Part shown: positions 8,470-13,811 of the stretch, piece by piece | Layout of the letters: the number at the start of each line of letters is the position of its first letter | Position numbering within the stretch: position 1 is the first letter of the stretch | IMG/VR virus record: IMGVR_UViG_3300010389_000001 | Coordinates: 62,001-126,000 of that record | DNA length: 64,000 nucleotides | Reading direction: 5' to 3' (one strand) | Notes under the pieces: generated by a model | Told to the model about the DNA's origin: nothing | Databases searched by the model: none | What the model saw: the letters and a program-made list of their open reading frames with translations, nothing else | Made by a program: the position numbers and the translations under genes

Positions 8470-10311
8470 ATGGCCGGCTCAGATAACGAATTATCAATAA
8501 TTGATTTAATAGAGTATTATGAGCCGGGACCGGTTTTGAAAGAGCGAACACCCAATTTAAATAGAACATCATTTTATCCTGGCGACGGCGAGCATCATGC
8601 AGAAGATGGTGAGCCCGAGCCGGGCAAAAAGGTTACAAAAAAAGCAAGGCTGGATATTATTCGGAAAAAGGCGCTTGGGTTAACCGATGTTCCCCGTGCT
8701 GCAATTCCGGGTAATGAAGGGTATCTTGGAAGAAGAGACCCCGGCACTGAAGAGGGTCAGGAAGAATTTACGACATGGTTCGGAGGGCAGGAAGATTTTG
8801 TTCTAGATAATCTTGAAAAAGAAGATAAGCTACCTACTAATAAAAAAAGAAATGAAAATAAACCTGAATCAGGAGATTTAAATAAAATGAGCTTCGAAAA
8901 ATCTGAATTACTAAAACTAGCTAAAGCCCTGAGCGTCAGAGGGCAGGTCTCTGCGTCTGATTCTGTTATTAGATTGACAAAGCAGGCTGACACGAATTCC
9001 GGTAGTAACTCGGCATTCTTCGATGGATGGGAGGAACTAACGAGGGGTGCTGGTCAAAGCCTGAGAAGCTTGACGACATGGGGAGGGGGTTACTTACCCA
9101 AAAACGCGCTGAAGGAAAGAATAGCAGATATGTGGGTCACATATGGGGGCGAACTTCGATTTGTTGATCAGAGTGGCGTAGAGAAAACTCTAGAAGCTCT
9201 TATCGAATTCTGGATAAGTCAAGATCTGAAATTTGGCCGAGGAGGAGAGCCTAATGACACAGACAAAGCAAGAGTTAAGACTTTCCTCGATGGGAAAAAA
9301 AGCACAGAGATTACTGTTGAAGGACTAATTGGCGTTATGTGGAATGACGGAGAAAGTGGATATAAGACAGGTATAGGCCAGGCTCAAACTAGCTTTACGG
9401 ACATGGTGCAGGATGAAACAAAAACATTTGTTGATGCATGGAATAGTGTAATTAGGTACAAGCAGAAGCAGGGCACTGGCACATCAACCGGCCAGCCTGT
9501 TGCGGGTACAACTCAATCATTACCGGGAGGGACTAGCGCAGCTAAAGAGGAGCCCTGGGTGCCAGTACAGAAGAGAATTAACGAGTTATTTGCTGACGGT
9601 GGAGCACTGCAATCAAGAAGGCCCGATCCATGGGAGCCTCTAGCGACCGATGGAGATATGGGTGAGAAGTCTACCACTGCTTACAACGCAGCTACAGGAT
9701 CTAACTATGATCCCAATGCTAGACCGTGGCCTATACCAAAAGCGTTAACCCCGGAGCAGGCACTAGATGAGTTGAATGCTCAGATCGAAGAAGTCGTTGC
9801 CCCAACACCCTCTGAGCCTGCGGATACTACAAGGGGAGGAGGGCCAGGTGAGGTAGCTCCAGAAGAATCACCTATTGCCGAGGGCAAGGCCACAGGAGAC
9901 CTACAAGACTGGTATATAGCGGACTCGGATGATGGAAGCCATTATGTCGGGATAGGAAAAGAAGGAACTGAATATGCATACCAGATATTTGCAATATCAA
10001 AAGAGCCGAATGAAAGCGGCAGGCATGATGCCGTAAGAATAACCGATAGAGGTGATGATCCCAGATTCACTGGAGCAAGATTCTTGGAGGGCAAAGAGGA
10101 CGGAAGACTTATATCTCAGATAAGAAGAGATAGGCTGGGTCGAGCGCAGAGAACAAGATATACTGATGTGATCAGGGGACAGAGAAAGAGCGTTAAGGGC
10201 GATACCCGGAGAGGCAGAAGAAGAGGCGCTGAGAGAGCGGAGAGAGCCGCAGCTGGAACCAGAAGAAGAGACCTTAGGCAGAGGGGAAGATCCGAAAGAC
10301 GAAGAAGATAG
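8470..10311 (+). CDS. Probable virion protein with Arg-rich C-terminus; likely second in-frame start at 8887
   Basis: 613 aa; internal AGGAGA + ATG 8887; Arg-rich tail ending RGRSERRRR. Confidence 0.6.
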   Translation: MAGSDNELSIIDLIEYYEPGPVLKERTPNLNRTSFYPGDGEHHAEDGEPEPGKKVTKKARLDIIRKKALGLTDVPRAAIPGNEGYLGRRDPGTEEGQEEFTTWFGGQEDFVLDNLEKEDKLPTNKKRNENKPESGDLNKMSFEKSELLKLAKALSVRGQVSASDSVIRLTKQADTNSGSNSAFFDGWEELTRGAGQSLRSLTTWGGGYLPKNALKERIADMWVTYGGELRFVDQSGVEKTLEALIEFWISQDLKFGRGGEPNDTDKARVKTFLDGKKSTEITVEGLIGVMWNDGESGYKTGIGQAQTSFTDMVQDETKTFVDAWNSVIRYKQKQGTGTSTGQPVAGTTQSLPGGTSAAKEEPWVPVQKRINELFADGGALQSRRPDPWEPLATDGDMGEKSTTAYNAATGSNYDPNARPWPIPKALTPEQALDELNAQIEEVVAPTPSEPADTTRGGGPGEVAPEESPIAEGKATGDLQDWYIADSDDGSHYVGIGKEGTEYAYQIFAISKEPNESGRHDAVRITDRGDDPRFTGARFLEGKEDGRLISQIRRDRLGRAQRTRYTDVIRGQRKSVKGDTRRGRRRGAERAERAAAGTRRRDLRQRGRSERRRR

Positions 10312-10423: not shown

Positions 10424-11014
10424 ATGAGCCCAAAGTCGATCAGTATATTCGATACAGCCCAAACAAAGAAGCGGACGAACCGCAATAACAAGCAAAAGAA
10501 AAGTACGGCAGAAAAGCAGCGAATTGCAGATAAAGAAGCTCTGGGTAAGGCGGCTCTTCAAAAGTTAAATCCAATGGTCATCCCTCTACTTGCAGCCCAA
10601 GAAAGGCCGTCTGGATTTATCACTTCTTCAATCGATGTAATTCAGAACAATCCTCATCGTCTATCGGATAATTGGATTGAGAAGCTAAATAAGTGGGTTG
10701 ATGATGTAGCTGCCGCATCAATTTTAGAGGAGCCCGATATTAAGATCGGAGAGAGAATCGATATTGGCCCCATCATGGTAGATCGGATTATTCCTCCAAA
10801 GCTTGAATCCCAATATCCTATGCCAGCCATTATGTGCAAGGACGAAAGAGGCTGGAAGTGGTACTTTAAAACAAGTAAGGCTGGACAGTTCTCTTCTGGC
10901 GACTATATTACCTTCAGGGCAATTCCCTCCGGTCACGGAGAGGGGATTACCTTTCTGCGCAGGCCAACTAAATTGGTTAAGGTAGAAAAGAATATGGAGG
11001 AAGATAGTGATTAG
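10424..11014 (+). CDS. Hypothetical protein (beta-rich C-terminus, possibly OB-fold)
   Basis: GAGGAGG RBS, 196 aa. Confidence 0.6.
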   Translation: MSPKSISIFDTAQTKKRTNRNNKQKKSTAEKQRIADKEALGKAALQKLNPMVIPLLAAQERPSGFITSSIDVIQNNPHRLSDNWIEKLNKWVDDVAAASILEEPDIKIGERIDIGPIMVDRIIPPKLESQYPMPAIMCKDERGWKWYFKTSKAGQFSSGDYITFRAIPSGHGEGITFLRRPTKLVKVEKNMEEDSD

Positions 11015-11097
11015 TCAGGAAGGTAGATTTGATCTATCATTAAAATATAATCTTCTATATTTTTGTTTTTACAAAATTCTATAGCAGCAGCTTTTTT

Positions 11098-11150
11098 GGC
11101 TCCTATTAATTGCCTTGGGATTAATAGAAAAGCCCAACTCCCCAAGGCAG
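11098..11150 (+). promoter_or_regulatory. Structured purA leader (pseudoknot or alternative hairpins)
   Basis: CTATTAAT(11103-10) pairs with ATTAATAG(11120-27); the enclosed loop TGCCTTGGG pairs with CCCAAGGCA(11141-49). Confidence 0.55.
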
Positions 11151-11174
11151 TCATTAGAGAAAAGGAGGTGCTTT

Positions 11175-12222
11175 ATGTCCAAGCTAATCAGACTCGCAGA
11201 TGTTGTAGTTGGTTTAGCTTGGGGTTAACTACCCCGGCGATGAAGCAAAAGGGAAAATTACTGCCCAACTCGCATCAACAAGGTCAGCGTCAAACGGTGG
11301 CTCATTCTACGATTACATCGTCCGTTGGGCCGGTGGTAATAACGCAGGCCACACTGTATGGGTTGGCGGAGAAAAATTTAAGACACACTTGGTTCCATCC
11401 GGAGTATTCTATGGTGTGAAATCGATTGTTGGCCCTGGCTGTGTTTTGCACCAGGAGCACTTTAATGTGGAGCTTTCTTATCTGGAGAAGAACGGCTTTG
11501 ACCCAGGGCTGGTAAAGGTTTCTCCAAGATGCCATATTGTAACTGATGAGCACCTTGAGTATGACCGAAATAATCTTGCTAAAAAGCTTGGAACTACAGG
11601 ACGAGGAATTGCTCCAGCTTACTCTGCAAAGTTTGCAAGAACCGGAATTCTAGCAAAGGATGTTCTTCCAAGTCATATGCTGTGGGATGAGCGGCTAGAT
11701 GGCAATGTCCTATGCGAAGGAGCACAGGGCGTATGGCTTGACATTGATCATGGTCTTTATCCTTATGTAACTTCATCAACGACTCTGCCTTATGGAGCTT
11801 GCAGCGTCGGCTTTCCTCCTCAGAAGATTCGCAATATTTGGGGTGCAGCAAAGATTTATGATACAAAGTCTGGAGAGGATCCAAGATTTCCTGACTCACT
11901 CTTAGATGATCCAAAGCTTTTGAATGTTGCGAATCTTGGACAAGAATATGGCGTAACCACGGGGCGAAGAAGAAAGGTTAATTGGCTAAATTTAAATATG
12001 CTAATTGACTCTATAAATCTTTCTGGCACAACCAACTTGGTTATAAGTAAATGTGATATACTGCTTGATCTTGGAGAAGGATACTTTAATCTGTTCTATA
12101 ATGATAATATGGTGAGTTTTGCATCATTAAAGAATATGTGTGAGTTCATCACCAACGAAGTTACTTTAAACTGTCCTCTGGTAACTGAGATAAGGTATTC
12201 AAGCTCCCCTATGGAGATTTGA
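11175..12222 (+). CDS. purA: Adenylosuccinate synthetase (short form), interrupted by a 13-nt insert in the P-loop
   Basis: AGGAGGT RBS, ATG 11175 MSKLIRLADVVVGLAWG then TAA; resumes in +1 frame at 11236/11239 (G)DEAKGKI..RWAGGNNAGHT..HLVPSG..GTTGRGIAPAY..EGAQG..YPYVTSS..GVTTGRRRKVNW; 344 aa if the insert is skipped. Confidence 0.93.
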
Positions 12223-12223
12223 T

Positions 12224-13045
12224 TTGTCTAACGTAACTGTTCTTTATCACGCAGGCTGCCCCGATGGCTTTGGCTCTGCGTGGTCTTTCTACAAAAAGTA
12301 TGGCACTAAAGCTGAGTATATACCCGTTCGTCACGGAGATCTTCCTCCAGACGTTACAGGAAAGACTGTTTTTATTGTTGACTTTTCTTATCCCAGGACT
12401 ATACTGGAGGAAATGCACGCGGCAGCAGAATCGCTGACGGTAATAGACCATCACATTACTGCCCAAGAAAGTCTGCATGGCTTAGACTATTGCCACTTTG
12501 ATATGTCTCATTCCGGCGCTTATTTATCATGGGCCTTTCTCTTTGGAGAAGAAGACGTACCGCTTTTAATTAGGTATATTGAGGATAGAGATTTGTGGAA
12601 GTGGCAGCTTCCTTCTGCAGAGCAGATTTTATCTGCTATAGATTCGTATGACAAGAGCTTCTCCACTTGGGACTCTTTAAATGAGAAGCTAGATGAGCCT
12701 CATTCGAGGTCATGGTTTAAGCTGCACATTGAGGGCTCTGCAATCTTGCGCTATAACAAGCAGCTTATCGAGAGGCTGAAAAAGAAAGAGCATACAGTAA
12801 AGATTGGCGATGATACTATCCGCGCTGTAAATTCTCCATTTTTTCAATCAGAGATAGGCGCTCAATTGAGTCGCGGTGAAAAGTATGCTGCTGTTTACTA
12901 TTATGATGGAGAAAAGTATGTCTTCTCGCTTAGGTCGGACGAAGATGGAGAGAATGTCTCTGTAGTGGCCAAAAAGTTTGGAGGAGGAGGCCATAAGAAA
13001 GCTTCTGGTTTTTCGGTTATGAACATCTCTGATTTGGAAAAGTAA
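12224..13045 (+). CDS. DHH/DHHA1-family phosphoesterase (nanoRNase-like)
   Basis: YHxxCxDG, VDFS, IDHH, DRDLW, SLRS, GGGGHKKASG. Confidence 0.9.
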   Translation: MSNVTVLYHAGCPDGFGSAWSFYKKYGTKAEYIPVRHGDLPPDVTGKTVFIVDFSYPRTILEEMHAAAESLTVIDHHITAQESLHGLDYCHFDMSHSGAYLSWAFLFGEEDVPLLIRYIEDRDLWKWQLPSAEQILSAIDSYDKSFSTWDSLNEKLDEPHSRSWFKLHIEGSAILRYNKQLIERLKKKEHTVKIGDDTIRAVNSPFFQSEIGAQLSRGEKYAAVYYYDGEKYVFSLRSDEDGENVSVVAKKFGGGGHKKASGFSVMNISDLEK

Positions 13046-13046
13046 A

Positions 13047-13811
13047 TTGACTATCAAGAACAGTGTAACGAAGAAGATTCGCGGAATGAAGCTGCCGCAT
13101 AATCCGTCAACTCCATGGAGGTCGGTAGAGCTTCTGAGCGTTGACTCCATGCTAGAAGACGCCGATGAATCGGAATGCCTTTCCATTGCCATGGATGAGA
13201 CGGCATTAACTGAAATCGCAAGACATTTGCATTCGAGAATGTCAAAGAACGGCCTTCCAACATCCCCTTGGTATGAGCGTTATATTGAGAATAAGCTTTG
13301 CGCTTCTTTTATTATGAAGCTTGCCAGCAAATCGGATGAGCTTCTTAAGAAGTCAAAGAACCATCGCCTAAAGTTGGCTCTATTTACCGGAGGACACTAT
13401 CAGTCAGTCGAAATGATTGATTGGATTGCCGAAAATTCAGAAGATATAGATCTTGTTGTTGCCGCATCAAGAGTATGTTCAATTTCAGTTCTTAGAAAAA
13501 TATCGAAGAAGAAGGATGCCCTTAGGTTGGTCAAGACTATCGCATACGAAAGGCTAGGGCCTGTAGAGTGTCTTGATGAAATGATTAATGATAAATACGC
13601 AAAGAATAGAGAGATGGGTTATAACTATGCTCCGCATGGCTATCCGCCCCTAGAAGAGAAGGCTCTAACCGAAATCGCAAAGGGGCCTACGATAGCTTTA
13701 ATTAAAAAGCTAAGCTCGGAGTATTTGCCAATGCTAATGGCGAATAGGAATGTATTAAAGAATCGGTGGATTGCTAGTTATCTTGAAAAAAGAATGAACT
13801 CGGGAAAGTAA
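13047..13811 (+). CDS. Alpha-helical protein, paralogue family member 2
   Basis: C-terminus WIASYLEKRMNSGK. Confidence 0.65.
   Translation: MTIKNSVTKKIRGMKLPHNPSTPWRSVELLSVDSMLEDADESECLSIAMDETALTEIARHLHSRMSKNGLPTSPWYERYIENKLCASFIMKLASKSDELLKKSKNHRLKLALFTGGHYQSVEMIDWIAENSEDIDLVVAASRVCSISVLRKISKKKDALRLVKTIAYERLGPVECLDEMINDKYAKNREMGYNYAPHGYPPLEEKALTEIAKGPTIALIKKLSSEYLPMLMANRNVLKNRWIASYLEKRMNSGK

Follow-up and report, generated by a model that had tools for sequence, protein, structure and literature searches.

The purA gene is interrupted within its P-loop

The locus studied here raises the question of how a phage can produce adenylosuccinate synthetase from a purA gene whose reading frame meets a stop codon within the P-loop and resumes in a different frame. 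Programmed translational bypass, in which ribosomes hop over the interruption, is the best explanation and a likely one; it is inferred, and no protein, ribosome-profiling or RNA evidence supports it. The window (the whole stretch of 64,000 nucleotides that was analysed) comes from a 232,533-bp IMG/VR virus record with 42% G+C and an estimated completeness of 68%, and the phage carrying the split purA gene is described as marine. The gene is arranged as follows.

11164..11168, plus strand: Shine-Dalgarno sequence GGAGG, 6 nt 5' of the ATG at 11175
11175..11225, plus strand: first coding piece of purA, 17 codons, MSKLIRLADVVVGLAWG, ending with the take-off codon GGT at 11223-11225
11226..11235, plus strand: coding gap of 10 nt, beginning with the stop codon TAA at 11226-11228 and missing in insert-less relatives
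11236..11238, plus strand: landing triplet GGC, not decoded under the hop model
11239..12222, plus strand: second coding piece, 327 codons and a stop, adenylosuccinate synthetase beginning DEAKGK

The first frame runs from the ATG through TGG (11220-11222) and GGT to the TAA, which is followed by CTACCCC (11229-11235), by GGC and then by GAT GAA GCA AAA GGG AAA in the +1 frame, which stays open from 11218 up to its stop codon (12220-12222). Skipping 13 nt (11226-11238) joins the 17-codon frame to the 327-codon frame and restores WGDEAKGK, the exact sequence present in 15 insert-less relatives. The amino acids of the first piece correspond to the beta-1 strand and the start of the P-loop of intact relatives, and the earliest ATG, GTG or TTG in the second frame is its codon 51 (11389). 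Re-reading of the window confirmed the coordinates, the hairpin and the 13-nt arithmetic on which the initial annotation, made from the letters only, had based its proposal of a compact hop. The Shine-Dalgarno sequence is strong and of the AAGGAGG type in all insert-bearing alleles, and weaker in insert-less ones.

The second piece matched the Pfam family Adenylsucc_synt (1e-71), and the enzyme of the window is nearer to PurA (4m0g, 5e-52) than to the PurZ entries (about 1e-8). The motifs GDEAKGK, GGNNAGHT, EGAQG and TTGRRR are visible; by sequence, the gene is of the canonical PurA type and not phage PurZ, with its catalytic motifs kept. A near-identity DNA search of curated phages gave no match to the locus, and the best protein match to the enzyme among these phages was 37% identical.

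A DHH/DHHA1 phosphoesterase gene (PHROG 4771, 3e-72; 12224-13045) starts 2 nt past the purA stop and is followed by a gene of about 250 codons with unknown function (13047-13811). The order of an unknown gene of ~190 codons, purA, the phosphoesterase gene and the ~250-codon gene is kept in most of the examined relatives, with or without an insert; the gene upstream of purA differs in L020 and L016. Farther upstream, a 613-codon ORF (8470-10311) without a family match has a strongly Arg-rich C-terminal tail (RRGRRRGAERAERAAAGTRRRDLRQRGRSERRRR), and similar tails were found in the syntenic gene of relatives. The 5' UTR of purA contains an inverted repeat (11112-11148; GCCTTGGG, 21 nt, CCCAAGGC) that is kept in L018 and L104 and partly in L006, with no T-run behind it and no Rfam match. 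Rfam, promoter and terminator scans of 10800-12400 returned nothing above chance.

The phage genome encodes a tmRNA (G000:C1, 52650-53026, outside the window) with the tag ANNNYHYNSVALAA, as well as seven tRNAs (Arg, Leu, Met, Lys, Pro, Thr, Ala) in the 23814-45574 region of G000:C1, also outside the window, among which there is neither a tRNA-Gly nor a suppressor tRNA. Stop-codon reassignment was rejected because long ORFs in the phage genome end with all three stop codons.

The insert is present in independent sequences

The 13-nt insert of the window is genuine and not an assembly artefact. Contig sequence from an independent sediment metagenome spans 11166-11322 with three substitutions and no indel, and contig L018, whose protein is 75% identical to that of the window, contains the same 13 nt; these two sources rule out an assembly error, so the confirmation of the insert proposed together with the hop was obtained. 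Downstream of the insert, the window and L018 differ with a dS of 1.8, yet the insert and its flanks are identical. A scan of genome bins for carriers gave three false positives, with no host or cultured carrier identified. No RNA run containing the locus was found, and the one metatranscriptome examined for it contained only unrelated conserved fragments.

Related purA genes carry different inserts at the same codon boundary

A protein-guided scan of IMG/VR identified 18 related loci with 61-75% identity. Eleven of them have an uninterrupted WGDEAKGK, and in the other seven the interruption falls precisely at the codon boundary seen in the window; further insert alleles came from pattern scans of viral and metagenome collections. 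The purA genes contain at least eight distinct inserts at one codon boundary, with skipped lengths of 12, 12, 13, 13, 29, 30, 32 and 32 nt. Frame offsets of 0, +1 and +2 are all represented, and the in-frame (offset 0) alleles carry a stop too. TGG GGT is followed immediately by TAA or TGA in every insert allele, the take-off codon being GGT in ten of ten alleles and the stop lying directly next to it in ten of ten. Five of eight alleles have GGC, GGA or GGT as landing triplet and the other three have AGC or AGT, so that only two of the three bases agree between take-off and landing throughout; the window pair is GGT/GGC. These alleles are related by descent, and their counts are not fully independent.

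The initial annotation had suggested that related phages would carry different sequences at the same site while keeping a Gly codon, a stop, a hairpin and a second Gly codon. The search for such inserts was positive, and the stop and the hairpin were held in all of them. The Gly landing codon held only in part, with AGC or AGT in the remaining alleles.

Both coding pieces are under purifying selection

Downstream frames are intact in all ten distinct insert-bearing purA genes, with lengths of 318-331 codons. Pairwise dN/dS among these genes was 0.08-0.19, with dS above 1.3 and saturated; a comparison of this kind had been proposed as a check on the hop, and it indicates purifying selection with dN/dS of about 0.1. 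Constraint is equally strong over the 43-50 codons that separate the landing site from the earliest possible start (dN 0.09-0.38, dS > 1), which include the invariant DEAKGK and GGNNAGHT. In the first piece, the residues of intact relatives are kept while the codons differ synonymously. No start codon was found in the second frame 5' of the P-loop in insert-bearing purA genes. Since both pieces are conserved under selection and no start precedes the P-loop, the second frame must be entered from the first. Selection on both pieces is observed directly; that both are translated and needed, with ribosomes passing from the first frame into the second, is inferred from sequence alone.

A proposed hop from GGU to the triplet before Asp

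In the proposed mechanism, ribosomes would start at the ATG at 11175 and read 17 codons. With peptidyl-tRNA-Gly on GGU (11223-11225) and UAA in the A site, the tRNA would detach from its codon, the ribosome would move 13 nt, the same tRNA would re-pair on GGC (11236-11238) and decoding would resume at GAU (11239). The product would be a single polypeptide with an intact WGDEAKGK loop and the predicted junction peptide LADVVVGLAWGDEAK. A hairpin formed by the take-off codon and the gap would bring the landing triplet beside the codon that precedes it, and a 5' stem-loop would re-form behind a ribosome that has moved forward. One hop, from GGU to the triplet before GAY, fits all alleles, and a single frameshift or read-through event cannot, because the offsets are 0, +1 and +2. 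For the alleles with an AGY landing triplet the product may read WGDEAK or WGSDEAK. Thus, the compact-hop reading of the initial annotation is supported by comparative evidence; no protein or RNA data are available, and both the hop and its efficiency remain inferred. As a caveat, the nascent chain at take-off would contain only 14-17 residues, without similarity to the gene 60 peptide signal, and there is no Shine-Dalgarno-like triplet in the short gap of the window.

Insert alleles have two conserved RNA structures

Two predicted structures accompany the insert.

11220..11236, plus strand: take-off hairpin UGGGGU / UAACU / ACCCCG, its stem including the take-off codon and its loop the stop
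11179..11222, plus strand: 5' stem-loop, with the outer stem CCAAGCUAA (11179-11187) pairing with UUAGCUUGG (11214-11222)

All purA inserts carry a hairpin. The window has a reduced form of 6 bp with a 5-nt loop, in which U11220 pairs with G11236 and GGGGU (11221-11225) pairs with ACCCC (11231-11235) around the loop UAACU, at -9.0 kcal/mol. Taken alone it is only weakly unusual (z = -1.9; eight of 200 shuffles fold as well). In the four short alleles (U)GGGGU pairs with ACCCC(A), and the non-coding CCCC arm is retained in all four. The four long alleles consist of GGU, U[G/A]A, CC(C), UUCG, (G)GG and U[C/U]A, followed by an AU-rich tail; their hairpins have z-values of -4.1 to -5.1 and a CC-UUCG-GG tip, and the second stop base pairs with the 3' arm as G-C, A-U or G-U depending on the allele, which represents covariation.

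The second element, the conserved 5' stem-loop ending at the take-off codon, was missed by the initial annotation. In all insert alleles its 3' arm ends at the base ahead of the take-off codon; the window example has -16.6 kcal/mol and z = -2.3. Ten of ten insert alleles have this stem-loop (z -2.2 to -4.1), and the 15 insert-less genes lack it (mean z -0.27; Mann-Whitney p = 2e-5, uncorrected for phylogeny). Two pairing solutions were observed: codons 2-4 pair with the Leu-Ala-Trp codons in short alleles, and the start-codon region pairs with Leu-Cys-Trp in long alleles. Compensatory changes occur in both and were seen in L006, L129 and L058. Gly-Leu is encoded by GGT TTA in ten of ten insert alleles versus two of 15 insert-less ones. 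For T4, mRNA pairing behind the ribosome was proposed to drive forward movement (10.1101/2024.12.09.627546); by analogy, the purA 5' stem is positioned to act in a similar manner, and the roles of both structures are inferred.

In short alleles, folding also predicts an outer helix across 11169-11247, between start-codon bases UGCUUUAU and the post-landing Asp-Glu-Ala codons AUGAAGCA, that together with the two hairpins makes a three-way junction. It is possible that this helix sequesters the start codon; this is a folding prediction without covariation evidence.

The insert is linked to a homing endonuclease gene and moves as a block

Two features upstream of and across the first coding piece bear on the origin of the insert.

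11017..11100, minus strand: homing-endonuclease remnant, last 28 codons, 82% identity to L018 residues 255-282 (E 5e-9)
11013..11234, plus strand: block missing in a near-identical strain, comprising the endonuclease remnant, the 5' UTR, the first coding piece and the gap

Between purA and its upstream neighbour, L018 has a 283-codon gene in the opposite orientation (L018:2014-2862, minus). The encoded protein matched PHROG 3339 'homing endonuclease' (1e-16), DUF7487 (1e-22) and, only weakly, a TnsA-like nuclease N-terminal family. In the window, the remnant forms the C-terminal 28 codons of a 47-codon ORF (11011-11154, minus), and about 760 nt of the endonuclease gene have been lost. L104 and L129 have a 13-nt insert with the landing triplet GGA beside a 56%-identical copy of the endonuclease gene, the match in L104 extending to the contig end. 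The endonuclease was seen only with 13-nt alleles and was undetectable at L006, L020 and the long alleles. A search of IMG/VR for its relatives returned only the L018 contig itself and distant giant-virus matches.

An insert-less strain in run X1 has flanks ~99% identical to the window and lacks the 222 nt from 11013 to 11234; its contig joins 11012 to 11235 via 32 other letters that encode an insert-less N-terminus. The purA gene of this strain starts with GTG, overlapping the stop of the upstream gene, and reads GLALGDEAK, with Leu replacing an otherwise invariant Trp. The purA body of L104 and L129 groups with that of the insert-less L016 (support 100/100), and a sliding comparison placed a switch of affinity in L104, i.e., a recombination breakpoint, directly after the landing site. 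On the purA tree, the insert must have been gained or lost at least four times. The combination of endonuclease linkage, L104 breakpoint, tree discordance and presence/absence in run X1 indicates that the endonuclease gene, the 5' UTR, the first coding piece and the insert constitute a mobile block; the mosaicism and the linkage are direct observations.

The endonuclease linkage and the mosaicism point, by analogy with T4 MobA and gene 60, to a selfish-element origin of the insert. In the MobA/gene 60 system the same pattern is found, and the insert protects its carrier from its own nuclease (Manning & Atkins, 10.1101/2022.08.31.505936). A free-standing homing endonuclease gene upstream, present or past, would be the most likely reason for the purA cassette, and the insert would disrupt the endonuclease target in conserved P-loop DNA with the protein unharmed, as in T4. 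This immunity function is inferred.

Inserts of the same type occur in a large terminase gene

A scan for the long-allele hairpin identified a second, unrelated gene with such an insert (L168:3605-4976, minus strand), a large terminase split by GGT TGA CCC UUCG GGG UCA ... GGT just before Walker B, whose pieces match PHROG 2 at profile positions 254-362 and 365-598. Among the 80 terminase relatives returned, 70 have an uninterrupted GEGLDW..., a single one was not long enough for a call, and nine were flagged as insert-bearing; two of these nine (L322 and L352) read through uninterrupted and had been flagged solely for their short contigs. L186, from the hairpin scan, adds one more allele. The carriers (L168, L186, L303, L319, L324, L333, L342 and L363) are small marine phage contigs. 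Broader hairpin patterns returned mostly gene-end hairpins or cases where TRR was TGG and not a stop, and ORF filters left terminase loci only; a scan of the 232-kb genome for codon-stop-hairpin-codon arrangements gave 136 matches, including the true site, and was discarded as too permissive.

The terminase inserts share one site and have UUCG, UGCG, GAAA or AGUGA loops, and a stop, TAA or TGA, lies directly behind the take-off codon in every allele, at nine of nine loci. Take-off and landing pairs are GGT/GGT, GGT/GGC, GGC/GGT, GGC/GGC and, shifted by one codon, CTT/CTT; in one further allele, GGT/TGC, the landing matches at two of three positions. We infer that these covarying matched codons are a signature of peptidyl-tRNA re-pairing. 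At the AGC and AGT landings of purA and the TGC landing of the terminase, positions 2 and 3 can pair with the GCC anticodon, and P-site re-pairing has considerable latitude (Manning & Atkins, 10.1101/2022.08.31.505936). AGGGA lies 6 nt 5' of the landing triplet in L333 and L342. Gene order around the terminase inserts is that of intact relatives, and no extra ORF of at least 70 aa was found in the 1.2 kb flanking each side of the junction (no domain search).

Alternative explanations

The initial annotation had suggested that the hop gates purine synthesis, i.e., that it chiefly regulates the amount of enzyme instead of being the scar of a selfish element. For this, it can be said that the cassette persists where the endonuclease is decayed (the window) or undetectable (L006, L020 and the long alleles), that a hop is unlikely to be fully efficient and would yield less enzyme (T4 bypassing is about 50% efficient; Manning & Atkins, 10.1101/2022.08.31.505936), and that the start region is sequestered in the predicted 5' stem-loop. 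Against it, there is no sensor and no link to purine levels, the insert is absent from most relatives, and the cassette moves as a block with the endonuclease gene, with inserts of the same kind in a terminase gene. We consider gating unlikely, and the suggestion found no support.

Removal of the insert at the RNA level, by endonuclease-plus-ligase splicing or by polymerase slippage between 3-nt repeats, followed by ordinary translation, is very unlikely. It would also account for the freely varying frame and length, the matched flanking triplets are what slippage between direct repeats would use, and there are no RNA data against it. However, an in-frame stop follows the take-off codon in every purA and terminase allele and has a role in translation only. 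Moreover, inserts of 12-13 nt are far below the size of self-splicing introns, excision of the hairpin as a unit would leave the window frame unrestored, and the insert is retained in the DNA of an independent sample.

Addition of 4-10 residues to the P-loop, by a plain +1 shift of frame in the window or by read-through of the stop where an allele is in frame, is likewise very improbable. The +1 frame is open from 11218, and a shift within 11218-11228 would give ...GLAWG-NYPGDEAKGK. However, with offsets of 0, +1 and +2 and stops in the in-frame alleles, no single event suits all; re-pairing after a +1 slip would be poor on GGU UAA C; and the extra residues would be wholly different in each allele, within a motif that does not vary among 15 intact relatives.

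It is all but excluded that the gene is a dead pseudogene, that the insert is a scar left by repair of an endonuclease cut, or that only the downstream piece is made, from an internal start: the short inserts are near-palindromic to the left flank (TGGGGT ... ACCCCA), a possible footprint of break repair, but both pieces are intact in ten alleles, dN/dS is ~0.1 with saturated dS, also over the 50 codons that precede the earliest possible start, and the 17-codon first piece is conserved as protein. A unique insert followed by neutrally evolving sequence, which the initial annotation had named as the mark of a recent pseudogene, was not observed.

Comparison with known bypassing systems

Efficient programmed bypassing has been described in T4 gene 60 and its topoisomerase relatives and in yeast mitochondria, with the phiHau3 terminase as a candidate (10.1101/2022.08.31.505936, PMC10732093), and the T4 cassette is still called unique by Manning & Atkins (10.1101/2022.08.31.505936). 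Our search of full-text literature returned no paper that ties bypassing to adenylosuccinate synthetase.

T4 gene 60 reads GGA UAG CC UUCG GG CUA, followed by an AU-rich tail and a second GGA (T4 record). Like purA, it has a Gly take-off codon with a stop directly after it, a stem-loop containing the take-off codon and a 5' stem-loop; a landing triplet that suits the same tRNA is shared with the window allele, and across the purA alleles only in part. Long purA alleles share its CC-UUCG-GG tip and, as GGU-UGA-CC-UUCG-GG-UCA, the same architecture. In both systems the insert lies in an invariant enzyme motif, beside a homing endonuclease gene that is prone to decay while the cassette stays. They differ in the host gene (purA adenylosuccinate synthetase versus T4 Topo2L), in the endonuclease (DUF7487/TnsA-like versus the HNH MobA) and in the gap (9-29 nt in purA, with 10 nt in the window, versus 50 nt in gene 60). 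Since take-off in purA occurs at codon 14-17 (codon 17 in the window), there is no long nascent-peptide signal of the T4 type; the requirement for such a signal 14-30 residues before take-off is not met, and the purA chain is the beta-1 strand, as in insert-less relatives. No T4-type mini Shine-Dalgarno sequence was found 5-7 nt 5' of the landing triplet in purA gaps. In addition, unlike gene 60, purA landing tolerates matches at two of three bases, and purA is not split into two proteins with added tails. Judged from sequence alone, the purA element would work like T4 gene 60 but lies outside that cassette family, as the gene and the endonuclease differ.

In the Streptomyces phage phiHau3, bypassing of 10-nt inserts in the terminase gene has support from mass spectrometry of protein made in E. 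coli (PMC10732093). In both the phiHau3 and the purA systems the gap is very short (10 nt), the RNA around it is structured and the landing codon is close by; take-off in phiHau3 involves a rare UUA codon and the host bldA tRNA, whereas purA has a true stop, a hairpin holding the take-off codon and an endonuclease link. The mitochondrial byp elements of Magnusiomyces capitatus (Lang et al. 2014) are reported to be many short mobile inserts of 27-55 nt with hairpins, reportedly with an A-site codon that is hard to decode and with take-off and landing triplets that agree fully or nearly, deviations being tolerated. They resemble the purA inserts in being short and mobile, with hairpins and matched or nearly matched take-off and landing triplets. 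Unlike the purA inserts, byp elements belong to a eukaryotic organelle, do not involve Shine-Dalgarno use and spread within one genome; to our knowledge, they have no endonuclease link. In E. coli, tRNAs also hop over stop codons at a low level (Weiss et al. 1987, cited in PMC10732093), the peptidyl-tRNA again making a short move from one codon to a similar one beyond a stop. Such events are rare errors that no dedicated signal promotes, in contrast to purA, where the signals are conserved and the gene would depend on the hop.

Significance

The results introduce two host genes that are new for bypassing, purA and terminase, and a graded natural series of alleles from 32 to 12 nt. These alleles hold natural mutational data, i.e., covariation of hairpins and matched codons, tolerated landing mismatches and an insert-specific 5' stem-loop. 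A 13-nt hop at codon 17 would be a very small system for structural and kinetic work, and it would directly test the need for a nascent-peptide signal. On balance, we lean towards a bolder reading, in which stop-plus-hairpin cassettes are a general mobile way for homing-endonuclease elements to break their own target in the most conserved phage motifs (the PurA P-loop and the approach to terminase Walker B), and, reduced to 12-13 nt, can still support a hop at codon 14-17 that lacks the nascent-peptide and Shine-Dalgarno signals considered essential in T4 and in which only two of the three landing bases match. Because gene callers truncate such genes or break them in two, phage metabolic and packaging genes with these inserts would be mis-annotated.
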